A DNA stretch of 64,000 bases from Octopus sinensis (taxonomy: Eukaryota). Below the pieces are notes generated by a model. It was not told the DNA's origin. It saw only the letters and a list, made by a program, of their open reading frames with translations, and made no database searches. Below are positions 16,671 through 64,000 of this stretch, piece after piece (the first letter of the stretch is position 1; each line of letters opens with the position of its first letter). The translations under genes were made by a program, and so were the position numbers. The stretch is from assembly GCF_006345805.1 (NCBI RefSeq), contig NC_042997.1, positions 193,378,001 through 193,442,000 of the forward strand, written 5' to 3'.

Positions 16671-16840
16671 AGTAGATGTAAATGTCCAACATGAAGTGTT
16701 TGTAAGGTTTTACAAGTTCATTTTGTTTCATTTATGGAAATGAATTTTTCTAAACTGTTGAAGTAATGCAGAATAATTTGCTACATTATTATATTTATTT
16801 TATCTTTTTCCCTTCTTTGTATACAGTTCATCAATTAAAA

Positions 16841-19800: not shown

Positions 19801-19906
19801 ACGACAGCCAAAATGGAAAAAGAAAAGTGGTAATAAAAGTAAATTTGTTACGAAACCTAAACAGAAAGGAGTAGGGAAAAAACAGAAAAGGAAAAATTGG
19901 AAGTAA
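16841..19906 (+). CDS. CEBPZ: CCAAT/enhancer-binding protein zeta (Mak21/Noc1, CBF domain), single coding exon, about 1021 aa
   Basis: Uninterrupted ORF with family motifs GTLSDK, SSLVNKIGDP, DRFYMVLYRK, RIKAFIKRLLQ, HRNPLYC, HFHPTVSLYA, DYTLIRFLDRFVFKNPK, an acidic tract and a basic C-terminus. Start placed at Met26 of the listed ORF because a polypyrimidine tract plus AG (16825-16826) lies just upstream. AATAAA at 19921. Confidence 0.92.
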   Translation: MPENLKIKKKATKMDKSLVKEESDEIVSDVQAFIKDLGLNTSVPSSMKSNVSAQPLPEDFNWGDMMPKKKGTVPPSASQTEKVSADTSKDAADSKGPSKKKSKNKYRPQTDEGVVGLNKVSSEKVQDDEISSTTKSVKKKKTGEKSGKKEFIKLVVEAGTVWYDYLEKKNMDNKSRDNTNKTKRTSAKPLESEAAEIFQKDVENYKNLRAKREPSESSWFEKVIASGTLSDKEAAFQLYVTQSPVHNLDSLDNLIAMTQKKSRHVNIKAALVLKDLFIKYILPPDKTLMSFHEHKTDELSNSNRKKQLALWYFENELKKRFGVFAESLVRMLQDNVDACKEKVLAIISEILVYTSEQETILLSSLVNKIGDPSYKVASKTIYVLSKFLKLCPLKKLKVIDEVEMLLCRSGMKERGLYYAFCFLSNLRLKEGESKIAEKLVNVYLKFFQKYIQKGEMDNRMLSAILCGINFAFKIIHENREFIAEHTEILYKTVHLVNFNTSLQVMMLLYQIMESESLSDRFYMVLYRKMCDPALKSSNRHMHFLNLVFRAIKNDHSEARIKAFIKRLLQICLYQYPPFICGSLCLLSEVFREKPKLLNLDQNAENLMDSEDEECYKDVELDSDTESPQQAASDSELTNKDDNEEDSKSSGQVSSWVHRKNLKYVPTNIYYMPHHRNPLYCQAETTLFWELYLLSFHFHPTVSLYASTLLNNKFIDHEGNPLQDYTLIRFLDRFVFKNPKQIKEKSSEPKKNRYIPTGIKLIPANDRKYLEKANKIPVEEKYLYQYFLHKKAVTTDKGIFSEDEEVSDDEFDQILDQYERNADDKELTAFDFYGELGKQSAKKRSLEADFSSSEGSDEESDDEVDLGEDFMAEYKDFGGESDNENSNCEFDEENIKFSDDSDGEDDYEKFCKPKIKKLKRLKKESEQNPHDTSKFFVAAEEFSHMLEDNIVSNIGSQAVVNKDKSSAKQMKWEMAREQWMKKSDWKQKRQPKWKKKSGNKSKFVTKPKQKGVGKKQKRKNWK

Positions 19907-31200: not shown

Positions 31201-33820
31201 GACCACCACCATCTATTGTAGTGTTGTACTGAAAAGCTTTTCCCCTTGTAACAATTAACAGCTTTTGTGTTTCCTTGTCTATTGATAAGGATTTCACAAA
31301 AAAAGGGATTTTAATTCTATGAATTCTTTCAACTTGATTATAATCTTTCCTAATGGCTAAAATATCTAAATATGATGGTTTATCACAATAACAAACAATT
31401 TCACCTTCACCCATCTTACACACCCGTATATAAGGCTGCCTTAATGATACACTTCTCACTGTCTTTGATAGGTTTCCGATGACCCTTAATTGTTTCAGTA
31501 GGGGTAATGTGACACCTATTTGATTAGAATCCCATCGACATATATCTGTAGCTGTAGATGGCAGAGATAATCTAGACACAATGTTTCCTTCATTAGAAAT
31601 GTATAACAAGCAATCATGGTTGATGTCAAACACCACCAACTGTCCATTGGCCAGATTACATATTTCACCAATGACAAGTTTTTTGTCATTCTCCTTTTCT
31701 TTGAGTCGTATATTTAGATTTCTGATATAAGGATTTTTTGTGCGTAAATAACAGCCAGACGACTGGCCTTGATACTTGTAAAGAAGAACCCTGTTGAGTT
31801 GAGTGTCCGGCACATAAACAGTTCCTTGGAAAACAGCAATGTCAGGGTGAACAGGGAAAGGTAGTTTCCATTGCCATTTAATTTCTCCATATATCTCATA
31901 ACATATCAAAATAGAGTGTCTCTTGAAGAGGACATGAAAATAAACATTATCAGAGTAGATGTGATGAGGGTAGCCATAGAATGGAAGGTATTTTTGAAAA
32001 AGTTCTTCACCACATGTGGAATAAAATACCATTTTATTTTCGCTTCCATTTACGACTACAAAATTAATTGGAGTTGCAGCAATGGTGACATTATAATGTC
32101 CCATAGAAATTCTTTCTATAATGTCAACTTTATCTTCGTTGATCAAAAGGATATGGACCTCATTTTTGTTTTCATTGGTGGTCACAGCTAAAAACTTATT
32201 TGATACAATATGACATATTTTCATGTAATCAGTTTGGACCTTTATTAAAGGGCCTTTTCTTAGTTCAGGACAGGTGATATACTGAAATCCTTTAATTTCA
32301 CAATAAAATACCAGGAATCTGTTTGCGTTTATTCTACAAAAGAAAGAAGGAAGCTCAAGGAAAACTAAATTATTTTGGTTAATTATTTCCCCATTATCAG
32401 TGAATAATTTAGCTTCCTTATTTATGTAAATTATTAATATAGAAGATGTAGACATAGGAAGAATATTTGTAATGTTGTAGCAATCCTCAATATAAATATA
32501 GTCTTTTAAACTGGGGGTACGTAGCTGGTGGTTGTATGATAGTTTGGGCCAAAAGTCTTTATTTATTTGAATGGCATGTGGTTTGCCACAATAATCTGTT
32601 ACCAAAATGGTATCTTTACCAACAGAAATAGAGCAGCATTTCCTGCCAATGTCCCTCATTGTTACACCACCTTTAGCCGAAATTTTATAAATAATTTGTC
32701 CCTGGAGGACATAGAAATAGTTTTGGTACTGAGAGATTTTACTTGGGAGGTGCAGAGAATGGGTCTCTACTTCCCATAACTGTTGGCCATCCAGTTTATA
32801 ACAGATTATTCTGTTAATACTGGAAAATGTGATTAAAAGTATATTCTGGACCCCTACAGTAATATCTGTTGGCGTTTCTTTGGTCATGAATTCATATCGA
32901 ATTCTATTATCTTCCCAATCAATTTGGTAAACAGTCTTACCAAACATTTCTACACCTATAAGTGTAGAATGTTCCAAGTAAGCAACCAAATGTAATCCCA
33001 ACTGTATCCTTTTAATCTTGAAAGCTGTGGGGCTGATAATAAGAATCATTTTTTGGAAGGGGAGGGTTGCTAGAACCATGTCTTCACCAATTCTGGTGAA
33101 ACTGGTGACAGAAGATGGACAATGAGCATCATTTCTGTCACCGTTTCTTGTCAGACAACATATTGTCATACAATGGTGGGAATATGTTACTACTCCCTCC
33201 TGTATGACAATAATATTGGATATTATTGTGCTTTTGTCAAATTCTTCCCCAGATTCCTTGATCTTTGCCTCTCTGGTCAGAACTGGCGAAAGAGGCCGAA
33301 ATTTTGTGGTTATTTTTGGTGGCTCAATGGTTTTGTGTTTGTCTTGTAGAATATTTCTCTGTAAATAGTGTTCCAGGAACAATTCTAGCTTTCCAAAAAT
33401 AATAAATTCTTGATTGTAATCGCTTTTTTTAATGTCTTTCATCAAAATTTCTATTCTCTGTGTAAATTCTTTTAGAAAAGTATTTTCATTCATTCCTATA
33501 TTTTTAAAAAAAGTACGTATTTCTTCCCGAGAATTTATCAACAAATTCATTTTGTCTTCATATGCATTGAATCTTGTATAAAATATATGTTTGTCAAAAC
33601 TATTTCGTCTTCGCATTATTTCCCTCTTTTCAGGGTCTCCTTTATGTCTTTTTTGTTTTTTTGTTGGCTCAGATGAAGCTTGTTTCTCTGACATTTCTCT
33701 CCTTGAACTGTCATCTCTCTCATATTTACACCTTTGATGGTCAACTCCTTCTCCATACCATTTTGTTTTTAAGTTACTTAAAGCCCTTTTCTGAGGGGTA
33801 GGTTTTGTTTGGTCTTCCAT
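28217..33820 (-). CDS. 1867-aa protein, single coding exon: basic/helical N-terminus plus about six tandem NHL-like beta-propeller domains
   Basis: 5.6-kb open frame in AT-rich DNA with no transposon motifs. Recurring blade motifs (PTDITVG, HPDIAVF..VYVPDT, TDICRWD, VKDFDISDKG, HDVGVTSFGDVVV). Acceptor TTCATTACAG 7 nt before an ACTATGG start. No signal peptide or TM segment is evident. Domain assignment is by eye. Confidence 0.8.
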   Translation of the reverse strand: MEDQTKPTPQKRALSNLKTKWYGEGVDHQRCKYERDDSSRREMSEKQASSEPTKKQKRHKGDPEKREIMRRRNSFDKHIFYTRFNAYEDKMNLLINSREEIRTFFKNIGMNENTFLKEFTQRIEILMKDIKKSDYNQEFIIFGKLELFLEHYLQRNILQDKHKTIEPPKITTKFRPLSPVLTREAKIKESGEEFDKSTIISNIIVIQEGVVTYSHHCMTICCLTRNGDRNDAHCPSSVTSFTRIGEDMVLATLPFQKMILIISPTAFKIKRIQLGLHLVAYLEHSTLIGVEMFGKTVYQIDWEDNRIRYEFMTKETPTDITVGVQNILLITFSSINRIICYKLDGQQLWEVETHSLHLPSKISQYQNYFYVLQGQIIYKISAKGGVTMRDIGRKCCSISVGKDTILVTDYCGKPHAIQINKDFWPKLSYNHQLRTPSLKDYIYIEDCYNITNILPMSTSSILIIYINKEAKLFTDNGEIINQNNLVFLELPSFFCRINANRFLVFYCEIKGFQYITCPELRKGPLIKVQTDYMKICHIVSNKFLAVTTNENKNEVHILLINEDKVDIIERISMGHYNVTIAATPINFVVVNGSENKMVFYSTCGEELFQKYLPFYGYPHHIYSDNVYFHVLFKRHSILICYEIYGEIKWQWKLPFPVHPDIAVFQGTVYVPDTQLNRVLLYKYQGQSSGCYLRTKNPYIRNLNIRLKEKENDKKLVIGEICNLANGQLVVFDINHDCLLYISNEGNIVSRLSLPSTATDICRWDSNQIGVTLPLLKQLRVIGNLSKTVRSVSLRQPYIRVCKMGEGEIVCYCDKPSYLDILAIRKDYNQVERIHRIKIPFFVKSLSIDKETQKLLIVTRGKAFQYNTTIDGGGLSTILSAGDILTILSGGSDSSISSSDGSISSIEMVSGDSEYETEAFFIFDGGDVSHHLYSIKMVPSVLMSQVKHPLNLYSGSIDQTFVYLIDNSRMFAINDHNLLVNDLFINNQLNYHIDLVDVFSRNISVSEMLSSTLYLQDLTVSDKARHIPLPQNLEDKLPVWIKYLVITENNLIAGWDEKNGNIKIFTLDGQLVDSIKWNAYRFIKICRWHSNTLIITNWDYFGNRSQLLTLKVEFPLLLVIYQTRDEYRCVASLSNNQLVCSKSENRSLLYFVDIDEIHSNVKETKQIHIPEPSLGRGEDGNNYYAPILDINVTAEDVIIVLNERFIVFLNSDGQYLHSVRHYMQHLLRDDRMTIDDSFLYIHGQWEKYLDCPDYQNILCLTQNGEYKRIFLNERIYKGEVYFFSINCKGPRFVGSSRRGKKKGLYVEGLFMVNRESFPVARLQTDECPVQVKDFDISDKGKTVACEKANNGNVKIFDEDGELLCHRNVASLVGGVCFTQESHIMATVPKRKEIFQLNGEDLQTSKVWPSLIPYGVIWRKVGGIYWCVHTELIECHCIKIDGDQVNILESVSLLNLDSGLRFPSITSETNKEIFSNELINKLKYSGGDGDGDGGRRRRGKSGEIISKSRLKVRCGNYIAEINNSGIDEISVRRLPYRTAMVPFSIPAFEEHVNYDYVDIRDQSSKLIKLDENVSVLIFRESVTLMRTTTTTVDILQHEQQQQPPLDICRWTDECFIVTFGREMRVFNRDFCRLKTIRTEKYYKRIYKYNDNQLVCGGHYIRDITQEERYKKYRRRWENKDCKDTDIFDPYYVDVVDIKDGKCKDEVCHGEVRRLGRLEADEGVHDVGVTSFGDVVVLRREIKKESGDWDHLCFVEWFREKSLVRRIRIEERTGFGLEYDISRPHLTIIGECVYITDKDNNIYEIPQHIEEETSEDNEILISEDNPKYLILRNYDNEVFEVLGFDVSENSLMVFGIIPGRQPFAFFYFDK

Positions 33821-45656: not shown

Positions 45657-47135
45657 CCGGAGTAAACAAGGTGGAAAAAAGAGTACTCAAATACCAGTGG
45701 TAGAGTAATATGCTTTAACAGAGTAACAGGTTTTGTTGGATTTTCTGCTGCTTTAAATAAGGTATATATATATATATATGTAGTTAAGTCTATGTCTGGT
45801 TATACAGTAGCTTTAGAGTCTGACAAGCCATCCATGGGGCTAAGCCCTTTGTAGTTGCAAAACAATCGGTCATTCGGTAGTCGGAGGACACAGACTAAAC
45901 CGTATATAAATACATAACTGCCGTTTGCTTTTAGAGTGTTCTTCTTTTTTCGGATATCTGATAGATTGACAATATATGTATGTGTGTGCGTCTTTTTTTG
46001 TTTCACTGCTCGTTGTTTTTTTTTACACAATTGTAGTCTAGATGTTCAATAAAATGATACTGATAGAATAAATCCTAGGCACAAAAGTATTTACTGGGAT
46101 TGATGTCATTGACCAAACCCCTCAAGGCATTGCCCCAGTATGGCCGCAGTCCAGTGACTGGCACAAGTAAAAAAAATTAAACTAACGAAATTCATATTAA
46201 ATTTGTAAATTGACTTCTATTTCCTAGAATCATCACAATTTTGAATATAGACAGACAGGCAGATAGAAAGATAGATAGATAGATATGTTTCTTTGTTAGC
46301 CACACAGGGCTGCACACAGACGGGACAGATTACAAAGTAGAGCTGGGGGGGGGGGGCGAGAAAAAGTGTGGTAGGTTTGCGATCAAAAGGGATTGTGAAA
46401 GGAAAAGAAAGAAAAAAAAGAACGATCAATAGGGATCGTGTATCACAGAAATGTCATGATGTAAAGTGTAAAGGGGGAAGCAGATAAGGTTTATCCGTGG
46501 AAAGAAAAGCCTACGGAAAAGACCACGGTAACTTCGGTCAATAATGTTACATGTTACCACATTTGTTTGCAAATAGGTAACCCTCTGTTTTTAATTTTTT
46601 TGGGTTCATAGAATTATGCTCAAGGCGGTTTCGTCATTCATACGTGCCATCCTTGCTACATTCACCCATCTCTTTTGAAACATTCGCTAGACAAAACTTG
46701 CCTCTCTACTCTCACTTTCCTTTTCAAGTGATACTTGAAGAAGTTGATGAGAGATTGACCAGAGAGGAAAGTGTTTGTTCACTAGATACATTCTTTCGCC
46801 ATAGCCACGAGAATGATAAAAATAGCTCTTCCTTCCCGTTTGAAGGAAGGAGGCGTGACAATATTGACGATAGACTCGGCTGATAAACCGACTCGTCCCA
46901 CACGTGACAGCAGTCGTTCGACATAGATAGATATAGATAGATAGAAAGATAGATAGATAGTGGGTGGACTAAATGTAAGGAACATAAATAGCGCTATATA
47001 AGCAAGGGAGATAACTAGAAGCATATTGCGTTTCTAATAAGCTTGAGGACGTAAGCGGTAAATATTTCCCGCAAAATCTTACGTATTTGAATCACTACGG
47101 CAGAAGGTACTTCAGTTAACGGTGTTGCATCAAGC

Positions 47136-47693
47136 ATGTCTAAAAAGCGGCAAGGTTACCTTGAATGGGATGATTACTTCATGTCAGTGGCTTTCCTCTC
47201 TGCTCAACGTAGCAAAGACCCAAGAACTCAGGTAGGAGCTTGTATTGTTAACGAAGATAGACGTATTGTTGGCATCGGATATAACGGTATGCCTCGTGGT
47301 TGTAGTGACGATGATTTTCCTTGGTGCAATGAAGGTGTCACTGAGCTAGATAACAAAAATCTCTACGTATGTCATGCTGAGCTTAATGCAATTCTCAATA
47401 AGAATTCTGCAGACGTTCGCAATTGCACTATATATGTTGGTTTGTTTCCTTGCAATGAATGTACTAAAGTCATTATACAGTCTGGAATTAAAGAAGTCAT
47501 ATACTATTCGGATAAATATAAGGACCAAATTACCTCTAAAGCTTCTCGAATTATGTTGGATCGTGCTGAAATAAAATATCGCCAGTATCGACCTACAAAC
47601 GGACAAATTGTTATAGATTTTACTTCATTAGAAGAAAAGAAAGACCGGATTATAAGTTCAGTTTTGTCCCCCATTTCTGAACTTTCACTTTAG
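47136..47693 (+). CDS. DCTD: dCMP deaminase copy 1 (A type, HAE intact; upstream ATG mutated to ACG at 47097)
   Basis: [49 protein letters not shown]: dCMP deaminase signature with Zn ligands and catalytic Glu; no introns. Confidence 0.9.
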
Positions 47694-47939
47694 TCAGATG
47701 CGAACATAAACACTTGGAATTCATTATATTGCCAACATTGCCTTTTCATAATGATATCCTGTTATATTTTCTAGTTAAAATTAATGGAACTGGTGAAGAT
47801 TTTCTAATTTTTATATGAAATATTAACTGCTGTATTTTTAACGAAAATTTTTATTCCATTTTGTTTTCGTTTGTGTGTACATAATATTTTAACTGCCTCT
47901 TTCTAAGAAAATGAAACTATCCACATTTGTTCCAATACG

Positions 47940-48100
47940 CAGTAGCGTAGCTGGGGTGGGGTGTGTGTGCATTTTGGGCCGCACTTTTAAAGAGGCACCA
48001 CCTTTGAGTCTGCTGTAGATAATGTTTTTTTTTTGTGATGGTCCGGGGGCAGCAAACAGAAAGGCATCCCCGGGCAGCACAGGTTCTAGCTACGCTAGTG
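47940..48100. mobile_element. hAT-like MITE in the DCTD 3' flank
   Basis: CAGTAGCGTAGCT..AGCTACGCTAGTG termini with an imperfect CCAATA(CG/TT) duplication. Complete again at 55325-55485; truncated at about 58450 and 62360. Confidence 0.7.
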
Positions 48101-48359
48101 CCAATATTCCCTCTAACTCCATCTAATAAAAAGTTATCCGACTTCCACCCAGGATGTTGCGTCATCTCACTAGCTTTTCTACTACATACCCACTATTCAC
48201 TGGAGCTGGTTGATCTCATACCTATTCTACTCAGGATCACCCGACTCCCTCTACCCTCTCGTCTCTTATTCATTTGCATAAAACACTACACCTGATCCTT
48301 CTGAGACGTTAACTCTTGGAATATCTTTTCTGGAGTTGTTCAAGAACATCAGTTACATC

Positions 48360-48687
48360 GGTTCTACTACCGAACTGTGTCCCGGTGCGCGCACTCGCAC
48401 ACTCACGCTAGCAAGTCGTAAGTAGTCGATCCTACAACGACTTTTTAACCCTAACCTTAACCCTAATTTTTTAACCCTAAACCCAACCCTAACTCTAACC
48501 TTAGTTTGTTTATAAAAATAATTTATTTACTTAGTTTAAAAAATTATTTATTTTGTTCGAAAAATATTATTTAATTTTCTTTGATATGTATTCAGCCTTG
48601 AAATACAAACATATGCGCAAGTCGTTGTAGGATCGACTACTTACGACTAGCTAGCGCGCACCCGCACCACTGTTCGCTAGTAGTACC
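48360..48687. mobile_element. GGTA/9-bp-TSD MITE with CCCTAA repeats
   Basis: Inverted copy of 6304-6652; TSD AGTTACATC at 48351-48359 and 48688-48696. Confidence 0.9.
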
Positions 48688-49177
48688 AGTTACATCAACT
48701 CAAACAGTTTCGGAGTTGCCTACGAAAGGTCACCAGTGCAGACCCTCACAGGTCAAACCAAACCATAAAAAAAAAATTAGTTCTATTAGGTTAATTATGT
48801 GTTAATTTCCTTAGTTTTCATTATGTTAGTCCCTGAAATAATTGTGCCTATTTTTAATGTTTTATTCTTGTTTTTTTTCCGTTTAATTCTTAGATTATTC
48901 ACATTGTAGTCTTTGTTTAATTTTCAAGTTTATTTGAATTTTATTCTTTATTTTAAAAAACTATTCATTCAAATCTTGATAAGCATGTTATTGTCTAAAT
49001 TTTTCAACCATAGTTTCAAATTCCACTAATTCTCGGAATTTCCTCATGAATATTTTATTCATAATCTATGTTGTACACACCCCCAAACTGTCAACGTCAG
49101 ATGACCCAAATAAAGCAGAGGAAACAAGCAATGGAATTATTTCTATTCATATCCTAAAAGATACAGAATATCTCTGT

Positions 49178-49432
49178 CAGTGGTTCACAACTGGGATTTA
49201 TATGGACCCTGAGGGGGTCCATGTAAGGTTTTGTTGCTAAAATTTTCATCTACATTAAATTGGTTCTATTTGTTCAACACACAAAATATTTTAGTTTTTT
49301 TTTAATAGAATTCTTCATAATATTATAAAAGTATAATAGGATTTCTTTAAACGACGAACGGCTATGGGCGATTCACCTGTGTAAAATGGGAATCAAAGGG
49401 GTCAATAGGTGAAAAGTGGTTGAGAATCACTG
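49178..49432. mobile_element. hAT (Charlie-like) MITE in the array spacer
   Basis: CAGTGG..CACTG termini; TSD ATCT(C/A)TGT. Repeated in the other spacers. Confidence 0.85.
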
Positions 49433-49459
49433 ATCTATGTAATTAAAGTCTTAAAGTTT

Positions 49460-49608
49460 GGATCTTATCACTTTGACCGGCAGATTTTTAAAATAATTAC
49501 TTTGAGAAAAAGATGTTTTATGTAACACACTACCAATATATGAAGTTTGAAAGTGTTCAGTTACAAAGAAATTATTTAAAATATCTACTGGTCAAAGTGA
49601 AAAGATCT
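49460..49608. mobile_element. GGATCT-family MITE (internally deleted here; about 286-bp palindromic form at 51217-51502 and in later spacers)
   Basis: 8-bp TSD TAAAGTTT on both sides; TIR GGATCTT(A/T)TCA..TGAAAAGATCT. Confidence 0.85.
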
Positions 49609-50573
49609 TAAAGTTTTAACTGTGAGAGCAAATGAAATAATATCAGGTATCATATAAAAGTGATATATAACAAATGTCTAATACTATGAAATATAAAAAT
49701 TAAAAAGTATTGTTTGGAATATGCAATCTTTATAATGTAGTCAGTTGTTCTGTTGATTTATATTTTTCTATCTTGAAATAAATATGTTATCAATTCTTAA
49801 TGTTTTTCTAACTTTACTAATGAACTATCCTCAAAAATTTCATATTCTTACTTCTTCATAACATTTCATTGAAGATATTTTTCTGTGAAATTCACCTGTT
49901 GCAGCCAGAAGTCATATTGTATTTTCCAGCATATATATTTCTTTACTGCCCACAAAGGGCTAAACATAGAGGGGACAAACAAGGACAGACAAAGGGATTA
50001 AATCGATTACACCGACCGCAGTGCGTAAACTGGTAGTTTATTTATCGACCCCGAAAGGATGAAAGGCAAAATCGACCTTGGCGTAATTTGAACTCAGAAC
50101 GTAACGACAGTCAAAATACAGCTAAGCATTTTGCCCAGTGCGCTAACGTTTCTGCCAGCTCGCTGCCTTTTCAATTTTTCCAGCCTATATGTTAACACTA
50201 TATATTGTATAAACATGTAGTGTAAAACATTCAGACATCATCATTATCTTCCCATATCCTGTTATACATTCTTTCGCCATTGCCACAAGAATGATGAAAA
50301 TAGCTCTTCCTTCCCATTTGAAGGAAGGAGGCGTGACAATATTGACGATAGACTCGGCTGATAAACCGACTCGCCCCACACGCGACAGCAGTCGTTCGAC
50401 ATAGATAGATAGAGATAGAAAGATAGATAGATAGACAGTGGGTGGCACAAAATGTAAGGGACGTAAATACCGCTATAAGCAAGGGAGATAACTAGAAACA
50501 TATTTGCGTTTCTCATAAGTCGAGGAAGTAATCTGTAAATATTTCCCGCAAAATCTTACGTATTTGATTCACT

Positions 50574-51062
50574 ATGGCAGAAGGTACTTCTGTTAAGGGT
50601 GTTGCATCAAGCAGGTCTAATAAGCGGCAAGGTTACCTTGAATGGGATGATTACTTCATGTCTTTCCCCTCTGCTCAACGTAGCAAAGACCCAAGAACTC
50701 AGGTAGGAGCTTGTATTGTTAACGAAGATCGACGTATTGTTGGCATCGGATATAACGGTATGCCACGTGGTTGTAGTGACGATGATTTTCGTTGGTGCAA
50801 TGAAGGTGTCACTGAGCTAGATAACAAAAATGTCTGCGTATGTCATGCTGGGCTTAATGCTATTCTCAATAAGAATTCTGCAGACGTTCGCAATTGCACT
50901 ATGTATGCTGCTTTGTTTCCTTGCAATGAATGTGCTGAAGTCATTATACAGTCTGGAATTAAAGAAGTCATATACTATTCGGATAAATATGAGGACAAAA
51001 TTACCTCTACATTAAATTGGTTCTATTTGTACAATACACAAAATATTTTAGTTTTGTTTTAA
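50574..51062 (+). pseudogene. DCTD: dCMP deaminase copy 2 (B type, HAG, 6-bp in-frame deletion, 3' end deleted)
   Basis: CHAGLNAI lacks the catalytic Glu; YFMS--FPS deletion. After TCTA (51006-51009) the sequence jumps into the spacer hAT MITE. Confidence 0.85.
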
Positions 51063-52439
51063 TACAATTCTTCATAATATTATAAAAGTATAATAGGATT
51101 TCTTTAAACGACGAACGGCTATGGGTGATTCAGCTGTGTAAATTGGGAATCAAAGGGGGCCATAGGTGAAAAGTGGTTGAGAACCACTTATCTATGTAAT
51201 TAAAGTCTTAAAGTTTGGATCTTTTCAGTTTGACCGGCAGATTTTTAAAATAATTTCTTTGTAAGTAAATACTTTAAAACTTTGTATACTGGTAGAATGT
51301 GTTACATAAAACATCTTCTCATGGTTTTCTTGAGAAAATTCTGTAGTTTGTAACAACAAATAGCTTACAAACTACAGAATTTTCTCAAGAAAGCCAAGAG
51401 AAAAAGATGTTTTATGTAACACACTACCAATATATGAAGTTTGAAAGTGTTCAGTTACAAAGAAATTATTTTAAAAATCTACTGGTCAAAGTGAAAAGAT
51501 CTTAAAGTTTTAACTGTGAGAGCAAATGAAATAATATCAGGTATCATATAAAAGTGATATATAACAAATGTCTAATACTATGAAATATAAAAATTAAAAA
51601 AATATTGTTTGGAATATGCAATCTTTATAATGTAGTCAGTTGTTCTGTTGATTTATATTTTTCTATCTTGAAATAAATATGTTATGAATTCTTAATGTTT
51701 TTCTAACTTTACTGATGAACTATCCTCAAAAATTTCATATTCTTACTTCTTCATAACATTTCATTGAAGATATTTTTCTGTGAAATTCACCTGTTGCAGC
51801 CAGAAGTCATATTGTATTTTCCAGCATATATATTTCTTTACTGCCCACAAGGGGCTAAACATAGAGGGGACAGACAAAGGGATTAAGTTGATTACATCGA
51901 CCGCAGTGCGTTAACTGGTAGTTTATTTATCGACCCCGAAAGGATGAAAGGCAAAATCGACCTTGGCGTAATTTGAACTCAGAACGTAACGACAGACAAA
52001 ATACCTATTTCTTTACTACCCACAAGGGGCTAAACACAGAGAGGACAAAGAAGGACAGACAAACGGATTAAGTCGATTATATCGACCCCAGTGCGTAACT
52101 AGTACTTATTTAATCAACCCCGAAAGGATGAAAAGCAATGTCAACCTCGGCGGAATTTGATCTCAGAATGTAATGACTGTCAAAATACAGCTAAGCATTT
52201 TGCCCAGCATGCTAACGTTTCTGCCAGCTCGCTGCCTTTTCAATTTTTCCAGCATATATGTTAACACAATATATTGTATAAACATGTAGTGTAAAACATT
52301 CAGACATCATCATTATCTTCCCATATCCTGTTGTATTTCACATAAAAATTTTGGTCCTCCAAAGTCGCCTTTGTGTATAAATTAGCCTAACTATTTTGGT
52401 TGTAAACTTTGGTTTTAAAAATTTGATTTTTATGCTGGA

Positions 52440-53625
52440 AAATGCAGGTGAGTTGAAATTGAAAATACATTGACTTTGCTAAGGCTTTCAACTCTGTGCC
52501 ACACAAAAGGCTTATGGTGAAACTCTCTGCAATAGGTGTGGGGGATGACCTTTTTAACTGGTTGAAATCCTTCATCCTCAGCCGAAAGGAGGTAGTCACA
52601 GTTCTAGGACAGCACTCTACACCATATGAGATGTCATCGGGTGTACCACAGGGATCTGTCCTTGGTCCCCTCCTGTTTGTGGCATACATTAATGACATAG
52701 ATGCCAATTTAAAGAATGCCACAGTATTGAAATATACAGACGACATCAAGCTGTACCTTGAAATCAAGAGGACTGATCCTGATGTCTACAACTCTTTCCT
52801 GCAATCAGACCTACACAATGCAGCAATGGATCACAGACTGGCAACTGAAACTGGCTGTGGACAAGTGTACCACCATGCATTTTGGGAGAAAAAACCCTGC
52901 GTCCACATACTCCCTCCACAACACTGATATCAAGAAATCCTCTTGCGAGCGTGACCTAGGCATCACTGTCAGCAGTGATTTGCGTTGGACAAAGCATATC
53001 TCTAAAATTGTCAAGAAGGCCGAGGGTGTCTTGGCATCACTCAGCAAGACTTTTGTTAGCCGCTCTCCAGCCATCTATTTAAAACTGTATACAGCTATGG
53101 TACGACCACACTTGGAATTCGCATCATCAGTTTGGAATCCCTATCTTGCTCAGAACCTTGACCTCCTGGAATCTGTCCAGAGACGTGCAACCAAACGCAT
53201 ACCCTCCATCAGACACCTACCATATTCTGAGCGCATTGTTTCCCTGGGCATGGATTCACTGGAGCTCCGGCGTCTAGCGACGGACTTGGTAAACACCCAC
53301 AAGGTTATCAACCACCTCACCAACAACAACACTGAACACCTTTTTGATCTCCATGTGTCTAACACACGTGGACATGCCTACAAAGTCAGAAAACAGCACA
53401 GCTCCCATGACTTTCGGAAACATTTTTTCACGCTCAGGGTTGCTGAAGCGTGGAATAAACTGCCTGCATCAGTTGTTGACTGCCATGACACTGCATCCTT
53501 TAAGGCCCTCATGCTTCCCGAAATCCGTCGAAACTACACCTGATTATATATACACTTTAGATGAGTTGTAGTGCACCTGAGCACTGTACACAATTATTAT
53601 TATTATTATTATTATTATTATTTTT
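52440..53625 (+). mobile_element. 5'-truncated CR1-clade LINE with RT domain
   Basis: DFAKAFNSVPH..SGVPQGSVLGPLLF..YINDI..KYTDDIKL, then ERDLGI..VRPHLEF..VQRRATK..RGHAYK; frameshift near 52810; (ATT)n tail. Confidence 0.95.
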
Positions 53626-54481
53626 ATTTTGTTTTCATGACACTGACAAAGCTTGCAAAGGCTAAAGGTATTGTATAATTTCTTCTCTGATTAGGTCATC
53701 ATTATCATCATCATTTAATGTCCCTTTACCATGCTAGCATGGGTTGGACGGTTCAACCGGGGTCTGGTAAGCCATGCAGGCTGCACCAGGCTCCAGTCTA
53801 ATTTGGCAGTGTTTCTACAGCTGGATGCCCTTTGTAATGCCAACCACTACGTGAGTGTAGTGGGTGTTTTTTACGTGCCACCAGCACAGGAGCCAGAGCA
53901 GGCTGGCAAACGGCTACGATCAGTTGGTGCTTTTATGTGTCACCGATATGGACGCCAGTCAGGCGGCACTGGCATCTGCCAAGTTCGGATGGTGCTTTTT
54001 ATGTGTCACTGGCATGGGTTACCACATTTGTTTGCAAATAGGTAACCCTCTGTTTTAAATTTTTTCGGGTTCATAGAATTATGCTCAAGGTGTTTTCGTC
54101 ATTCATACGTGCCATCCTTACTACATTCACCCATCTCTTTTGAAGAAGTTGATGAGAAATTGACCAGAGAGGAAAGTGTTTGTTCACTAGATACATTCTT
54201 TCGCCATAGCCACAAGAATGATGAAAATAGCTCTTCCTTCCCGTTTAAAGGAAGGAGGCGTGACAATATTGACGATAGACTCGGCTGATAAACCGACACG
54301 TCCCACATGTGACAGCAGTCGTTCAACATAGATAGATAGATAGTGGGTGGCACAAAATGTAAGGGACATAAATAGCGCTATATAAGCAAGGTAAATAACT
54401 AGAAACACATTTGCGTTTCTAATAAGCTTGAGGACGTAAGTGGTAAATATTTTCGGCAAAGTCTTACGTATTTGAATCACT

Positions 54482-55045
54482 ATGGCAGAAGGTACTTCTG
54501 TTAACGGTGTTGCATCAAGCATGTCTAATAAGCGGCAAGGTTACCTTGAATGGGATGATTACTTCATGTCAGTGGCTTTCCTCTCTGCTCAACGTAGCAA
54601 AGACCCAAGAACTCAGGTAGGAGCTTGTATTGTTAACGAAGATCGACGTATTGTTGGCGTCGGATATAACGGTATGCCTCGTGGTTGTAGTGACGATGAT
54701 TTTCCTTGGTGCAATGAAGGTGTCACTGAGCTAGAAAAGAAAAATCTCTACGTATGTCATGCTGAGCTTAATGCAATTCTCAATAAGAATTCTGCAGACG
54801 TTCGCAATTACACTATATATGTTGGTTTGTTTCCTTGCAATGAATGTGCTAAAGTCATTATACAGTCTGGAATTAAAGAAGTCATATACTATTCGGATAA
54901 ATATGAGGACAAAATTACCTCTAAAGCTTCTCGAATTATGTTGGATCATGCTAAAATAAAATATCGCCAGTATCAACCTACAAACGGACAAATTGTTATA
55001 GATTTTACTTCATTAGATGAAATGAAAGACCGGATTATAAGTTAA
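54482..55045 (+). CDS. DCTD: dCMP deaminase copy 3 (A type, HAE intact; TCA>TAA shortens C-terminus by 11 aa)
   Basis: CHAELNAI and PCNECAK intact; intronless. Confidence 0.9.
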
Positions 55046-57609
55046 GTTTCGTCCCTTCTTTCTGAACTTTCACTTTAGTCAGATGCGAACATAAACATTT
55101 GGAATTCATTATATTGCCAACATTGCCTTTTCATAATGATATCCTGTTATATTTTCTAGCTAAAATTAATGGAACTGGTGAAGATTTTCTAATTTTTATA
55201 TGAAATATTAACTGCTGTATTTTTAACGAAAATGTTTATTCCATTTTGTTTTCGTTTGTGTGTACATAATATTTTAACTGCCTCTTTCTAAGAAAAGGAA
55301 ACTATCCACATTTGTTCCAATACGCAGTAGCGTAGCTGGGGTGGGGTGTGTGTGCATTTTGGGCTGCACTTTTAAAGAGGCACCACCTTTGAGTCTGCTG
55401 TAGATAATGTTTTTTTTTTGTGATGGTCCGGGGGCAGCAAACAGAAAGGCATCCCCGGGCAGCACAGATTCTAGCTACGCTAGTGCCAATTTTCTTCTAA
55501 CTCCATCTAATAAAAAGTTATCCGACTTCCACCCAGGATGTTGCGTCTTCTCACTAGCCTTCCTACTACATACCGACTATTCACTGGAGCTGGTTGATGT
55601 CATACCTATTCTACTCAGGATCACCCGACTCCATCTACCCTCTCGTCTCTTATTCAAGAAAGTAGCACGGATATTGTGTGTGGACGGAACCGCATGAATG
55701 CAAAACAGGATGAAACCCAGGTATCAGTGTGGAGGCGGGGCTCGTGGGGTCCAAGCTAAACCTGTCCCTCCACTCCATCTGTAATGTTTTCCAGTCTGTA
55801 TTAGCATTCGATTTCTCCGATTTCATTATATGTTTGTAATTATGTGTAAATTTTTAATTTCATCCTTTGTGTAAAATCATTCGTGAATCTGACCCCAAAT
55901 CAGGTTCTTTGTTCGCCCCTTGTGGGTACTAAAAAAACAGGTATGTATGTGTGTGTGTGTGTGTGTTCCCCCCACTCCTCTGCTTGACAACTATGTTTGG
56001 TGAGTTTACATCCCCATAACTTAGTGGTTCAGCAAAAGAGACTGAAGCGATATATACTCAGCTTAAGAAAAAAATTCCTGAGGCTAAAATTCTTCAAAGT
56101 GTATTCCATCATGGCTGCAGTCTAATGATTAAAACAAGTAAAAAATAAGACATAAGTATGTACACACATACGAAATAAGGTCAAAAATTATCTGCACTCT
56201 TGCCATAACAAATCTTTATTGTTGTGACACTGCCTTCAGTGCATGCATACTTATAGTTGGTACTATTTTGGTGACGTGATCAAAGTTTGAGTCTGATTGG
56301 GCCATTTTTCTTTCTGGCATCACAGTGTAAGCATAGTCACTCCACTAGCAATGAGCACCAAAGAATAACAAAGAGCAGTGATCTGAGAGATGGTAATGGT
56401 ATGGTCAGAGGACACAGACTAAACCGTGTATAAATACATTACTGCCGTTTGCTTTTAGAGTGTTCTTCTTTTTTCGGATATCTGATAGATTGACAATATA
56501 TGTATGTGTGTGCGTCTTTTTTTGTTTCACTGCTCGTGTTTTTTTTTTTACACAATTGTAGTCTAGATGTTCAATAAAATGATACTGATAGAATAAATCC
56601 TAGGCACAAAAGTATTTACTAGGATTGATGTCATTGACCAACCCTCAAGGCATTGCCCCAGTATGGCCGCAGTCCAGTGACTGGCACAAGTAAAAAAAAT
56701 TAAATAACGAAATTCATATTAAATTTGTAAATTGACTTCTATTTCCTAGAATCATCACAATTTTGAATATAGACAGACAGGCAGATAGAAAGATAGATAG
56801 ATAGATATGTTTCTTTGTTAGCCACACAGGGCTGCACACAGACGGGACAGATTACAAAGTAGAGCTTTTTTGGTGGGGAGGAAAAAAGTGGGGGTAGGTT
56901 TGCGATCAAAAGGGATTGTGAAAGGGAAGGAAAGAAAAAAAGGGGAAAAAAAGAACGATCAATAGGGATCGTGTATCACAGAAATGTCATGATGTAAAGT
57001 GTAAAGGGGGAAGCAGATAAGGTTTATCCGTGGAAAGAAAAGCCTACGGAAAAGACCACGGTAACTTCGGTCAATAATGTTACATGTTACCACATTTGTT
57101 TGCAAGTAGGTAACCCTCTGTTTTAAATTTTTTCGGGTTCATAGAATTATGCTCAAGGCGGTTTCGTCATTCATACGTGCCATCCTTGCTACATTCACCC
57201 ATCTCTTTTGAAACATTCGCTAGACAAAACTTGCCTCTCTACTCTCACTTTCCTTTTCAAGTGATACTTGAAGAAGTTGATGAGAGATTGACCAGAGAGG
57301 AAAGTGTTTGTTCACTAGATACTTTCTTTCGCCATAGCCACAAGAATGATGAAAATAGCTCTTCCTTCCCGTTTAAAGGAAGGAGGCGTGACAATATTGA
57401 CGATAGACTCGGCTGATAAACCGACATGTCCCACATGTGACAGCAGTCGTTCGACATAGATAGATAGATAGTGGGTGGCACAAAATGTAAGTGACATAAA
57501 TAGCGCTATATAAGCAAGGTAAATAACTAGAAACACATTTGCGTATCTAATAAGCTTGAGGACGTAAGTGGTAAATATTTTCGGCAAAGTCTTACGTATT
57601 TGAATCACT

Positions 57610-58206
57610 ATGGCAGAAGGTACTTCTGTTAACAGTGTTGCATCAAGCATGTCTAATAAGCGGCAAGGTTACCTTGAATGGGATGATTACTTCATGTCAG
57701 TGGCTTTCCTCTCTGCTCAACGTAGCAAAGACCCAAGAACTCAGGTAGGAGCTTGTATTGTTAACGAAGATAGACGTATTGTTGGCATCGGATATAACGG
57801 TATGCCTCGTGATTGTAGTGACGATGATTTTCCTTGGTGCAATGAAGGTGTCACTGAGCTAGAAAACAAAAATCACTACGTATGTCATGCTGAGCTTAAT
57901 GCAATTCTCAATAAGAATTCTGCAGACGTTCGCAATTGCACTATATATGTTGGTTTGTTTCCTTGCAATGAATGTACTAAAGTCATTATACAGTCTGGAA
58001 TTAAAGAAGTCATATACTATTCGGATAAATATAAGGACCAAATTACCTCTAAAGCTTCTCGAATTATGTTGGATCATGCTAAAATAAAACATCGCCAGTA
58101 TCAACCTACAAACGGAAAAATTGTTATAGATTTTACTTCATTAGATGAAATGAAAGACCGGATTATAAGTTCAGTTTTGTCCCCCATTTCTGAATTTTCA
58201 CTTTAG
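57610..58206 (+). CDS. DCTD: dCMP deaminase copy 4 (A type, full length 198 aa, HAE intact)
   Basis: All motifs intact; intronless; upstream 56405-57609 duplicates 45888-47096. Confidence 0.92.
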
Positions 58207-60332
58207 TCAGATGCGAACATAAACACTTGGAATTCATTATATTGCCAACATTGCCTTTTCATAATGATATCCTGTTATATTTTCTAGCTAAAATTAATGG
58301 AACTGGTGAAGATTTTCTAATTTTTATATGAAATATTAACTGCTGTATTTTTAACGAAAATTTTTATTCCATTTTGTTTTCGTTTGTGTGTACATAAAAT
58401 TTTAACTGCCTCTTTCTAAGAAAATGAAACTATCCACATTTGCTCCAATACGCTGTAGCGTAGATGGGGTGGGGTGTGTGTGCATTTTGGGCCACACTTT
58501 TAAATTCTTAGATTATTCACATTGTAGTCTTTGTTTAACTTTCAAGTTTATTTGAATTTTATTCTTTATTTTAAAAATTATTCATTCAAATCTTGATAAG
58601 CATGTTATTGTTTGAATTTTTCAACCATAGTTTGAAATTCCACTAATTCTCAGAATTTCCTTAAGAACATTTTATTCATAATCTATGTTGTACACACCCC
58701 CAAACTGTCAACGTCAGATGACCCAGATAAAGCAGAGGAAACAAGCAATGGAATTATTTCTATTCATATCCTAAAAGATACAGAATATCTCTGTCAGTGG
58801 TTCACAACTGGGATTTATATGGACCCTGAGGGGGACCATGTAAGGTTTTGTTGCTAAAATTTTCATCTACATTAAATTGGTTCTATTTGTACAATACACA
58901 AAATATTTTAGTTTTGTTTTAATACAATTCTTCATAATATTATAAAAGTATAATAGGATTTCTCTAAATGACGAACGGCTATGGGTGATTCACCTGTGTA
59001 AAATGGGAATGAAAGGGGGCCATAGGTGAAAAGTGGTTGAGAACCACTTATCTATGTAATTAAAGTCTTAAAGTTTGGATCTTTTCAGTTTGACCGGCAG
59101 ATTTTTAAAATAATTTCTTTGTAAGTAAATACTTTAAAACTTTGTATACTGGTAGAATGTGTTACATAAAACATCTTCTCATGGTTTTCTTGAGAAAATT
59201 CTGTAGTTTGTAACAACAAATAGCTTACAAACTACAGAATTTTCTCAAGAAAGCCAAGAGAAAAAGATGTTTTATGTAACACACTACCAGTATATGAAGT
59301 TTGAAAGTGTTTAGTTACAAAGAAATTATTTAAAATATCTACTGGTCAAAGTGAAAAGATCTTAAAGTTTTAACTGTGAGAGCAAATGAAATAATATCAG
59401 GTATCATATAAAAGTGATATATAACAAATGTCTTATCCTATGAAATATAAAAATTAAAAAAATATTGTTTGGAATATGCAATCTTTATAATGTAGTCAGT
59501 TGTTCTGTTGATTTATATTTTTCTATCTTGAAATAAATATGTTATCAATTCTTAATGTTTTTCTAACTTTACTAATGAACTATCCTCAAAAATTTCATAT
59601 TCTTACTTCTTCATAACATTTCATTGAAGATATTTTTCTGTGAAATTCACCTGTTGCAGCCAGAAGTCATATTGTATTTTCCAGCATATATATTTCTTTA
59701 CTGCCCACAAGGGGCTAAACATAGAGGGGACAAACAAGGACAGACAAAGGGATTAAATCGATTACACCGACCGCAGTGCGTAAACTGGTAGTTTATTTAT
59801 CGACCCCGAAAGGATGAAAGGCAAAATCGACCTTGGCGTAATTTGAACTCAGAACGTTAAGACAGTCAAAATACAGCTAAGCATTTTGCCCAGTGCGCTA
59901 ACGTTTCTGCCAGCTCGCTGCCCTTTCAATTTTTCCAGCCTATATGTTAACACAATATATTGTATAAACATGTAGTGTAAAACATTCAGACATCATCATT
60001 ATCTTCCCATATCCTGTTGTACATTCTTTCGCCATTGCCACAAGAATGATGAAAATAGCTCTTCCTTCCCATTTGAAGGAAGGAGGCGTGACAATATTGA
60101 CGATGGACTCGGCTGATAAACCGACTCGTCCCACACGCGACAGCAGTCGTTCGACATAGATAGATAGAGATAGAAAGATAGATAGATAGATAGACAGTGG
60201 GTGGCACAAAATGTAAGGGACGTAAATACCGCTATAAGCAAGGGAGATAACTAGAAACATATTTGCGTTTCTCATAAGTCGAGGAAGTAATCTGTAAATA
60301 TTTCCCGCAAAATCTTACGTATTTGATTCACT

Positions 60333-60911
60333 ATGGCAGAAGGTACTTCTGTTAAGGGTGTTGCATCAAGCAGGACTAATAAGCGGCAAGGTTACCTTGA
60401 ATGGGATGATTACTTCATGTCAGTGGCTTTCCTCTCTGCTCAACGTAGCAAAGACCCAAGAACTCAGGTAGGAGCTTGTATTGTTAACGAAGATCGACGT
60501 ATTGTTGGCATCGGATATAACGGTATGCCTCGTGGTTGTAGTGACGATGATTTTCCTTGGTGCAATGAAGGTGTCACTGAGCAAGAAAACAAATATCTCT
60601 ACGTATGTCATGCTGGGCTTAATGCTATTCTCAATAAGAATTCTGCAGACGTTCGCAATTGCACTATGTATGCTGCTTTGTTTCCTTGCAATGAATGTGC
60701 TAAAGTCATTATACAGTCTGGAATTAAAGAAGTCATATACTATTCGGATAAATATAAGGACCAAATTACCTCTAAAGCTTCTCGAATTATGTTGGATCGT
60801 GCTGAAATAAAATATCGCCAGTATCAACCTACAAACGGACAAATTGTTATAGATTTTACTTCATTAGAAGAAAAGAAAGACCGGATTATAAGTTCAGTTT
60901 TGTCCCTGTAG
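60333..60911 (+). CDS. DCTD: dCMP deaminase copy 5 (B type, HAG: predicted catalytically dead but ORF essentially complete)
   Basis: CHAGLNAI with Zn ligands His, Cys, Cys retained. The stop codon comes from the inserted element. Confidence 0.75.
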
Positions 60912-62085
60912 CAATATCGTCTCTCATTGCTATCTTCACTGTTTGAGAAGAGTATTAAGAATGACCTCGGTCGAGATTACAAACAGCTTTGGCTAGTTTA
61001 ACATTGTTGTAAACACTAATTCGATTGGCTGACACGTTGGTCTCTACTACGCTCGCACCGCTGGTTATAACTTGGCGCAAAATGTCTCGACTTATTTTCG
61101 CGCCATAGTCCAAGCAGCCAATCACAGCTTTCCATTTCTGAAGTTCACTGGGAGCCTGGTGAAGCTTATAAAACAAGGTTTCTCAGAAAAATATTCGTCT
61201 TAGGTTTCCAGTCCTTCTCAGGGCGAACCTCTGACCACACAGAGCTCGTCTTAGGTTTCCAGTCCTTCTCAGGCGAACCTCTGACCACACAGAGCTCGTC
61301 GTAGGCTTTTAGTTCTTTTAAGAGCTAAGTCTCTGACCACACAGAGAATACTCGACCAAGTTCCAGTTTCGAGGCAAGCGACCACCATTATACAAGATGT
61401 TACAGATACCTAACATACTGTTAGTGTGAAATATCACCATGAAGAAAACGGTTACAAGATATCTATAACTAGAGAACAATAACCAAGCAGAACATCTGAT
61501 GAAGAAGCAGCAAGAACCAATCGACAAACATCGAAGATTTAAATTGTACACGAGACGACAACAGATTCAACTATAGCGGTTAGGTGAAATTCTCGCCACG
61601 AAGAAAACGGCTACAGTAACATGTCTGGAAGTATATTCATATCAAGAGAAAGAGAAACACAACGAGTGATTCAATTAATCTCAACTGCGACACGCAATAC
61701 CTTGATATAGAACTCTTACAGTGTACCTCATAAACGGTAAATCAATTATCTGTTCTTGGGTTCTAGTTTCTTCTAAGAACTACCTTAAGCCATCTGTTAT
61801 TACCTGTTGCCAAGCCGATACCAACAACATTAACTGTGAATCAAATCCCATCGACAATTCACTGGTCAGTACCTTTTTACGCCTAACGAACACACAGACA
61901 CAAAAACATGCGAACACTTACAACTTCCAACATCAAACATGATTGTAAAATATGTAAAATAAATAATGTATATATCTTAAAAAGAAATCTTGTTGTCATT
62001 ACAAACTTATGTGTATTGCCGCTGCATGTAAAATATAGTCAGTAAAATATATTAATAAGAATAGGATCACGTAACTATTTTTATA
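60907..62085. mobile_element. Probable solo LTR inserted in the last codons of DCTD copy 5
   Basis: 4-bp TSD TCCC (60903-60906, 62086-62089). Starts TGTAGCAATA and ends TATTTTTATA (degenerate inverted end). TATAAAA at about 61167; internal 51-bp tandem duplication 61195-61295. The DCTD 3' end resumes after it. Confidence 0.7.
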
Positions 62086-64000
62086 TCCCCCATTTCTGAA
62101 CTTTCACTTTAGTCAGATGCGAACAAAAACACTTGGAATTCATTATATTGCCAACATTGCCTTTTCATAATGATATCCTGTTATATTTTCTAGCTAAAAT
62201 TAATGGAACTGGTGAAGATTTTCTAATTTTTATATGAAATATTAACTGCTGTATTTTTAACGAAAATTTTTATTCCATTTCGTTTTCGTTTGTGTGTACA
62301 TAAAATTTTAACTGCCTCTTTCTAAGAAAATGAAACTATCCACATTTGTTCCAATACGCAGTAGCGTAGCTGGGGTGGGGTATGTGTGCATTTTGGGCCG
62401 CACTTTTAAATTCTTAGATTATTCACATTGTAGTCTTTGTTTAACTTTCAAGTTTATTTGAATTTTATTTGAATTTTATTCTTTATTTTAAAAACTATTC
62501 ATTCAAATCTTGATAAGCATGTTATTGTCTGAATTTTTCAACCATAGTTTCAAATTCCACTAATTCTCGGAATTTCCTTATGAATATTTTATTCATAATC
62601 TATGTTGTACACACCCCCAAACTGTCAACGTCAGATGACCCAAATAAAGCAGAGGAAACAAGCAATGGAATTATTTCTATTCATATCCTAAAAGATACAG
62701 AATATCTCTGTCAGTGGTTCACAACTGGGATTTATATGGACCCTGAGGGGGACCATGTAAGGTTTTGTTGCTAAAATTTTCATCTACATTAAATTGGTTC
62801 TATTTGTACAATACACAAAATATTTTAGTTTTGTTTTAATACAATTCTTCATAATATTATAAAAGTATAATAGGATTTCTTTAAACGACGAACGGCTATG
62901 GGTGATTCACCTGTGTAAATTGGGAATCAAAGGGGGCCATAGGTGAAAAGTGGTTGAGAACCACTTATCTATGTAATTAAAGTCTTAAAGTTTGGATCTT
63001 TTCAGTTTGACCGGCAGATTTTTAAAATAATTACTTTGTAACTAAATACTTTAAAACTTTGTATACTGGTAGAATGTGTTACATAAAACATCTTCTCATG
63101 GTTTTCTTGAGAAAATTCTGTAGTTTGTAACAACAAATAGCTTACAAACTACAGAATTTTCTCAAGAAAGCCAAGAGAAAAAGATGTTTTATGTAACACA
63201 CTACCAATATATGAAGTTTGAAAGTTTTCAGTTACAAAGAAATTATTTTAAAAATCTACTGGTCAAAGTGAAAAGATCTTAAAGTTTTAACTGTGAGAGC
63301 AAATGAAATAATATCAGGTATCATATAAAAGTGATATATAACAAATGTCTTAAACTATGAAATATAAAAATTAAAAAGTATTGTTTGGAATATGCAATAT
63401 TTATAATGTAGTCAGTTGTTCTGTTGATTTATATTTTTCTATCTTGAAATAAATATGTTATCAATTCTTATGTTTTTCTAACTTTACTGATGAACTATCC
63501 TCAAAAATTTCATATTCTTTCTACTTCTTCATAACATTTCATTGAAGATATTTTTCTGTGAAATTCACCTGTTGCAGCCAGAAGTCATATTGTATTTTCC
63601 AGCATATATATTTCTTTACTGCCCACAAGGGGCTAAACATAGAGGGGACAGACAAAGGGATTAAGTTGATTACATCGACCGCAGTGCGTTAACTGGTAGT
63701 TTATTTATCGACCCCGAAAGGATGAAAGGCAAAATCGACCTTGGCGTAATTTGAACTCAGAACGTAACGACAGACAAAATACCTATTTCTTTACTACCCA
63801 CAAGGGGCTAAACACAGAGAGGACAAAGAAGGACAGACAACGGATTAAGTCGATTATATCGACCCCAGTGCGTAACTAGTACTTATTTAATCAACCCCGA
63901 AAGGATGAAAAGCAATGTCAACCTCGGCGGAATTTGATCTCAGAATGTAATGACTGTCAAAATACAGCTAAGCATTTTGCCCAGCGTGCTAACGTTTCTG

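Follow-up and report, generated by a model that had tools for sequence, protein, structure and literature searches.

Deoxycytidylate (dCMP) deaminase, or DCTD, deaminates dCMP and is activated by deoxycytidine triphosphate (dCTP) and inhibited by deoxythymidine triphosphate (dTTP). Within the cytidine deaminase (CDA) fold, a paralogue lacking the catalytic Glu is known from ADAT3/Tad3, the inactive partner in the tRNA A34 deaminase heterodimer, which works only together with the active subunit and is ancient, universal in eukaryotes and essential. The N-terminal DCTD-like domain of vertebrate CDADC1 is also inactive, with its zinc ligands kept, and has an architectural role in the hexamer (PMC12088426). 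Here we describe a 64,000-nucleotide stretch of Octopus sinensis DNA (the window; CM016859.1, ~193.38-193.44 Mb) that holds a tandem array of intronless DCTD copies, two of which carry HAG at the catalytic motif HAE; of the two papers found to mention octopus together with deoxycytidylate deaminase, neither refers to HAG copies. We surmise that these HAG copies, which we call the B type, are probably decaying dead duplicates that arose through ordinary birth-and-death in a young tandem array.

Five DCTD copies were found in the window by tblastn, all on the plus strand, and a sixth, of the same type as the first, lies ~2.2 kb beyond the window end. We label the O. sinensis copies c1 to c6 and those of O. 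vulgaris (OX597814.1) v1 to v5. Positions are those of the window unless a locus is named, and features are on the plus strand unless stated otherwise; locus L003 (GCA_006345805.1, CM016859.1, 193,418,574-193,448,911) is the same sequence as window 40574-64000 and then continues beyond it. Trees resolve three lineages, namely A' (c1, c6, v1, v2, v5), A (c3, c4, v3) and B (c2, c5, v4), with a copy order from c1 to c6 of A' B A A B A'.

Catalytic site and lesions of the HAG copies

Both c4 (93.8 bits) and c5 (89.7 bits) match the CDA-fold zinc-binding family PF00383 well above the cut-off of 25, and the alignment to human DCTD (2W4L) covers nearly the full length (E 1.4e-66, residues 16-180), with HAE aligned at codon 95. 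A search with the copy 4 protein returned "deoxycytidylate deaminase-like" proteins from O. sinensis, O. bimaculoides and Argonauta hians ahead of those from other molluscs. All copies retain the zinc ligands H93, C119 and C122 (the two cysteines are invariant in 122/122 homologues), PCNEC is found in all five window copies, and the allosteric motif, defined as G(Y/W)N(A/G) (PMC12088426), reads GYNG at residues 61-64 in all copies and is invariant across the alignment. The proton-shuttle Glu at position 95 is present in 120 of the 122 aligned DCTD homologues, the only exceptions being two octopus B-type proteins. In the window, HAE is carried by c1 (47097-47693, A' type; GAG at 47379-47381), c3 (54482-55045, A type; GAG at 54764-54766) and c4 (57610-58206, A type; GAG at 57892-57894), and HAG by the B-type copies c2 (50574-~51009; GGG at 50850-50852) and c5 (60333-60911; GGG at 60615-60617). 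Given the invariance of this Glu, the established enzymology of the CDA fold and the inactivation of human CDADC1 by E400A at the equivalent residue (PMC12088426), E95G would be expected to abolish catalysis, and the B copies are thus predicted to be unable to deaminate. No further HAG protein appeared among the 120 best database matches, and the B lineage was found in O. sinensis and O. vulgaris only.

Six derived non-synonymous changes (N8K, M14R, E95G, I112M, V114A and G115A) are common to c2, c5 and v4 and occur in 0/8 of the non-B array copies of the two species; therefore the three copies share common descent, and the resemblance is not due to chance. As a result of these changes, c2 and c5 read MYAALFPC at the segment that reads IYVGLFPC in c1, c3 and c4, and codon 14 is changed from ATG to AGG. 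In O. vulgaris, v4 (CAI9716575.1) encodes a B-type protein of 198 aa from an intact frame, reading K8, R14, HAG and LYAALFPC. An earlier interpretation of the window (hereafter the sequence-only reading) had pointed to a GAG>GGG change at the proton-shuttle Glu in copies 2 and 5 with HAE in copies 1, 3 and 4, to the altered segment and the lost second Met of copies 2 and 5, to their distinct upstream region, and to the retained zinc ligands and nearly full open reading frame (ORF) of copy 5; all of these points are confirmed, the codons by direct reading, and the upstream difference corresponds to a spacer block, Z, beyond ~310 bp.

With respect to structural lesions, these are present in c2 and c5 and absent in v4. 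Copy c2 is a truncated, decayed pseudogene: it has an in-frame 6-bp deletion inside the conserved MSVAFLSAQ helix, it carries the private changes L34P, P75R, Y90C and K124E, all at positions where 116-121 of the 122 homologues agree, and its coding sequence (CDS) stops matching after codon 145, where it is fused to spacer block Y with the loss of the last 50-odd codons. The junction (50997-51009) shows imperfect microhomology (AAAATT..TCTA), and the open frame continues in the spacer to 51062. In c5, H93, C119, C122 and GYNG are kept, and a 192-aa ORF ends at a stop codon lying in a 1179-bp insertion (60907-62085, no strand assigned) that sits 23 bp before the original stop. This insertion replaces the last 7 codons and hence accounts for the short C-terminus; it is flanked by a 4-bp duplication, TCCC (60903-60906 and 62086-62089), carries a 50-bp tandem repeat in three units (61195-61346), and is specific to O. 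sinensis c5, being absent from v4 and any other copy, with no second copy within 70.9 kb. The displaced 3' end of c5 is still readable at 62086-62112 (last codons ..PISELSL, original TAG at 62110-62112). In addition, c5 has L84Q at a position that is Leu in 112/122 homologues. A dead paralogue in early decay is thus the best-supported description of c5, given the 3' insertion and L84Q; the frame of v4 is fully open, so that for this copy "pseudogene" is a putative label. The 90% protein cluster of the octopus copies comprised NCBI genome-derived members only, with none from Logan or ENA, and is uninformative on transcription.

The RefSeq protein XP_029642106.2 (P0003, 190 aa) combines the 5' part of c2 with the 3' part of c5, spanning exactly 50574-60911, and its join crosses 9.7 kb holding c3 and c4. 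We rejected it as a real spliced gene, as no collinear GT/GC-AG splice pair was found for the junction between codons 124 and 142 and the supposed intron holds two whole genes. The model looks like an annotation artefact "repairing" two damaged copies, and such a chimera is a practical point for annotation.

Array structure and the origin of the interleaved order

Homology between A and B copies begins only ~310 bp 5' of the ATG, and farther upstream the B copies adjoin block Z. The proximal upstream region of c2 (50264-50573), ~310 bp common with the A copies, is thus preceded by block Z and not by the long A-type upstream, and that of c5 (60020-60332) is common with the A copies from ~-310, with block Z directly before it. 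Spacer blocks X-Y-Z lie between c4 and c5 (58180-60019) and recur after c1 (47667-50263) and after c5 (62086-63782); we surmise that these spacers were the substrate of unequal exchange. The block that contains c2 (48272-54140, 5.9 kb) has no counterpart in O. vulgaris, where v2 follows directly after v1, and it is collinear with the c5 block except that ~820 bp are deleted internally, with microhomology at the junction. The repeat unit also includes a degenerate reverse-transcriptase retroelement (RVT_1 fragment, 52496-53543), found again between c5 and c6 as well as between v4 and v5.

By collinearity, the positional orthologues are v1 and c1, v2 and c3, v3 and c4, v4 and c5, and v5 and c6. 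The c5 and v4 regions are collinear over 6.8 kb with 98.0% identity, the c2 and c5 blocks are 97.6% identical, and c2, c5 and v4 are roughly equidistant (97.6-98.0%), clustering together in the CDS tree as well as in that of the proximal 300 bp upstream. Because v4 is the HAG positional orthologue of c5, the E>G change has a single origin before the split of O. sinensis and O. vulgaris. The apparent interleaving of HAG with HAE copies, a main feature of the sequence-only reading, is real as an order, but it is a by-product of block duplication, as one ancestral B locus together with one extra degenerate duplicate of its block accounts for it. The simple duplication of an already dead copy, put forward at the time as the fallback, is what we recover: E>G arose once and was carried along by block duplication.

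Copy number is six for O. sinensis and five for O. vulgaris; O. bimaculoides has a single intronless HAE gene and no B copy at the syntenic locus, where spacer blocks X, Y and Z and the adjacent CBF/Mak21 exon are collinear with the window. In the window, the CBF/Mak21-domain ORF is a single exon (16766-19906, 1046 aa), the 3' end of which shares 95% identity with the gene preceding the O. bimaculoides DCTD and therefore anchors the synteny. The DCTD gene of Argonauta is intronless as well, and that of Lottia measures 2.1 kb for 203 aa. Since the O. bimaculoides and Argonauta genes are intronless, the array arose by multiplication, in the O. vulgaris/sinensis lineage, of an octopod DCTD that had no introns to begin with. 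It offers a compact case in which copies of a housekeeping gene of nucleotide metabolism have been rapidly gained, lost and degraded between sister octopus species. Three DCTD genes of O. sinensis have been given as hemizygous and tandemly duplicated (XP_029637964.1, XP_029639851.1 and XP_029642093.1, the match of which to c1, c3 and c4 is not certain; preprint 10.1101/2020.09.15.298695), and such hemizygosity fits ongoing unequal exchange in the array.

Other routes to the B state were considered and set aside. Promoter loss was rejected: the B copies lack the conserved distal block upstream that O. bimaculoides has, but the constrained copies c6 and v5 are likewise short, sharing only ~340 bp of upstream sequence behind the reverse-transcriptase fragment. 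An origin of the B changes by retro-copying with hard-wired A-to-I editing was rejected, as only 2/6 of the stem changes are A>G; and rescue of B by RNA editing was rejected, as ADAR cannot revert a genomic G to A.

The surrounding region is AT-rich, with retroelement debris, and contains at 28217-33820 on the minus strand an unbroken 1867-aa ORF that has no Pfam match and is unusually long for one animal exon. A second O. sinensis DCTD cluster lies at ~212.1 Mb of CM016859.1 (L002 3874-4492 and 16279-16869) and comprises three DCTD copies located inside, and antisense to, a CTP_transf_1 gene. In two of these the frame is broken by a small inverted duplication common to both, and the third (P0007) is intact at 219 aa with a duplicated C-terminal segment.

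Selection on the three lineages

We estimated omega, the ratio of non-synonymous to synonymous rates, with our own GY94-F3x4 branch model (not PAML or HyPhy) on 14 sequences over codons 2-187 (186 codons), with Argonauta, O. bimaculoides and one copy of the second O. sinensis cluster as outgroups; the alignment is short, the counts are small and the array is known from two species, and all estimates that follow are to be read with this in mind. Under topology 1, omega was 0.24 for the background, 0.165 for A', 1.34 for A and 1.36 for B, and under topology 2 the corresponding values were 0.24, 0.168, 1.41 and 1.42. Fixing B at an omega of 1 was not rejected under either topology (p=0.61 and p=0.56, respectively), and equality of B with A' was rejected under both (p=0.003 and p=0.002). 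The B stem alone gave an omega of 1.36, above that of A' (p=0.037), and on the c2 branch all changes are non-synonymous. Hand counts of non-synonymous to synonymous changes agreed, with ~16:2 in B and ~7:10 in A' (Fisher p=0.0045). The B lineage thus evolves without detectable purifying selection.

The terminal branches of c5 and v4 gave an omega of 0.445 based on few changes, which is not separable from 1 (p=0.38) or from A' (p=0.29). Between c5 and v4, the CDS differs at 6/573 sites (1.05%) and the orthologous intergenic flanks at 89/5934 sites (1.5%) with 14 indels, a difference in divergence that is not significant. Considering that 4.9% of single-base changes create a stop and that the indel:substitution ratio is 0.16, a neutral copy with ~9 substitutions would still be open with an estimated chance of ~0.15-0.25; that one of the three B copies has kept its ORF intact is therefore not surprising.

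Constraint is seen in A' only, and the A-lineage copies carry changes at near-invariant residues. In c3, C110Y is accompanied by a premature stop at codon 188 (187 aa); c4 has a full-length 198-aa ORF, but with G68D and L89H; and v3 (L004 7282-7851), an HAE copy, has C110Y and an early stop, as c3 does, and G68D, as c4 does. It follows that c3, c4 and v3 may be decaying too with an intact catalytic motif, and that the label of active copies given to c1, c3 and c4 in the sequence-only reading holds as far as HAE goes and becomes doubtful for c3 and c4 (lineage omega 1.34, near-invariant residues altered). As for A', the ancestral start is changed from ATG to ACG in c1 (47097-47099), c6 (L003 25673-25675) and v5 (L004 14765-14767), all of which must open at Met14, leaving c1 with a 185-aa ORF (from 47136); B copies, instead, are without Met14. 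The two subfamilies therefore rely on different start codons, A' copies on Met14 and B copies, with M14R, on the ancestral one.

Explanations for the B copies

To account for these data, we propose that a single GAG>GGG transition at codon 95 removed the proton-shuttle Glu in one duplicate before the split of O. sinensis and O. vulgaris, founding a B lineage that would also have gained N8K, M14R, I112M, V114A and G115A. This dead duplicate may have been released from constraint by the transition, or it may have been unconstrained beforehand. Later, unequal exchange at the repeated X-Y-Z spacers would have duplicated the B-containing block in O. sinensis, or alternatively the c2 block may have been lost in O. 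vulgaris; either route would give A' B A A B A', an arrangement resembling interleaving. Subsequently c2 and c5 would have decayed, with v4 still open because it is young. In agreement with this, absence of a selected function appears likely for the lineage as a whole, and the value of decaying duplicates would be practical, in that the three lineages of the array are not all to be taken as active DCTD.

Several observations weigh against decay as the full account. The complete 198-aa ORF of v4 is at odds with it, and the tail lost from c5 is not a conserved one. All zinc ligands and GYNG are kept in c5 and v4, and their terminal-branch omega of 0.445 is compatible with some constraint. The private changes of these two copies fall at variable positions, L84Q excepted. 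Four of the six stem changes lie inside 21 codons round the active site, so that remodelling is conceivable, with the qualification that the changes at 112-115 may be one multi-nucleotide event. In addition, the codon model is self-written and covers 186 codons only, and gene conversion is visible at codons 55, 66 and 142-144, blurring both the tree and the counts.

The retention of fold and metal site together with E95G raises the idea that c5 and v4, but not c2, are functional pseudo-enzyme subunits, catalytically dead yet able to fold and to bind zinc and allosteric nucleotides, that form hetero-hexamers with active DCTD and tune its activity or regulation. In its favor are the intact 198-aa ORF of v4 and a c5 ORF short of the tail only, the retained zinc ligands and GYNG, the omega of 0.445 on the c5/v4 branches, a CDS divergence somewhat below that of the flanks (1.05% vs. 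1.5%), and the identical natural HAE>HAG in the structural DCTD-like domain of CDADC1 (PMC12088426). The last of these makes a pseudo-subunit feasible and is no evidence for the octopus genes themselves. We nevertheless regard this idea as unlikely, since the omega of 0.445 is not different from 1 (p=0.38), the gap between CDS and flanks is not significant, a frame would stay open through ~9 neutral substitutions with a chance of ~0.15-0.25, the whole B lineage has an omega of ~1.4, c5 carries L84Q at a conserved residue as well as the 3' insertion, the sister copy c2 has been left to decay, and the B lineage is missing from O. bimaculoides. A more specific version, which we consider distinctly unlikely, is that v4, and c5 prior to its insertion, is a stand-alone HAG pseudo-deaminase that co-assembles with DCTD and modulates its dTTP/dCTP feedback. 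If true, this would be an independent, recent, separate-gene re-invention of the dead HAG domain fixed inside vertebrate CDADC1. It would also reveal a regulator of dCMP deaminase made from a dead subunit at the very moment of its emergence, with the same HAE>HAG change as the CDADC1 domain.

It could also be argued that B is neo-functionalizing under positive selection, with the active-site cluster (E95G, I112M, V114A and G115A) reshaping the pocket for a new ligand or for non-catalytic nucleotide binding; the fast-evolving, copy-number-variable array would then act like a defense or arms-race locus. The six non-synonymous stem changes come with no clear synonymous one, four of them fall in codons 95-115, the omega point estimates exceed 1 for both B and A, and the array is hemizygous or variable. 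These omega values, however, are not significantly above 1 (p ~0.6), I112M and G115A are changes towards common DCTD residues (M in 23/122, A in 82/122), the three changes at 112-115 fall inside 9 bp and could stem from one mutation, and c2 decays, all of which leave positive selection very unlikely to be the explanation. More improbable still is an assembly artefact, in which c2 or c5 would be a mis-assembled allele or haplotig and no genuine second B copy would exist: in the individual sequenced, this part of the genome has been described as hemizygous or variable in structure, and O. vulgaris is without the c2 block, but the c2 and c5 blocks are only 97.6% identical, as divergent as c5 is from v4 (98.0%), and differ by large rearrangements, and HAG itself is confirmed in the independent assembly of O. 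vulgaris.

Taken together, decay of dead duplicates remains our favored explanation, and the interpretation offered by the sequence-only reading is partly supported. Its suggestion that B copies act as pseudo-enzymes or decoys is unsupported in view of a B omega of 1.36-1.42 and lesions in 2/3 of the B copies. The check for purifying selection that it had proposed gives a mixed answer, with an omega of 1.36-1.42, not different from 1, for the clade, and 0.445, compatible with both 1 and 0.17, for c5 and v4 alone. Accumulation of lesions at about neutral rates, which by its own account would speak against a role, is largely what c2 and c5 display, with v4, being intact, as the copy that does not conform.

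Comparison of the array with known systems draws the same distinctions. Canonical metazoan DCTD, as in the human enzyme (2W4L), is matched by the octopus genes in PF00383 and by the A and A' copies in the HAE/PCxxC zinc site and G(Y/W)N(A/G); unlike it, the octopus B copies have HAG, the octopod CDS is intronless, and the genes form a tandem array in O. vulgaris and O. sinensis. With ADAT3/Tad3, the B copies have in common a CDA fold without the catalytic Glu, but they differ from that ancient, conserved and essential subunit. The N-terminal DCTD-like domain of vertebrate CDADC1 (9HFQ-9HFT) is similar to B in its natural HAE>HAG change with the zinc ligands likewise kept; in contrast to B, it is fused to an active domain, conserved across vertebrates and additionally blocked by E157 (PMC12088426), whereas the octopus B copies are separate young genes of two sister species, with no detectable constraint and 2/3 of them damaged. 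Finally, unprocessed pseudogenes of young tandem arrays differ from the B lineage in that v4 still has a full open frame; they resemble it in an inactivating change inherited by block duplication, an omega of ~1, truncation, insertion, and presence/absence differences among close species.

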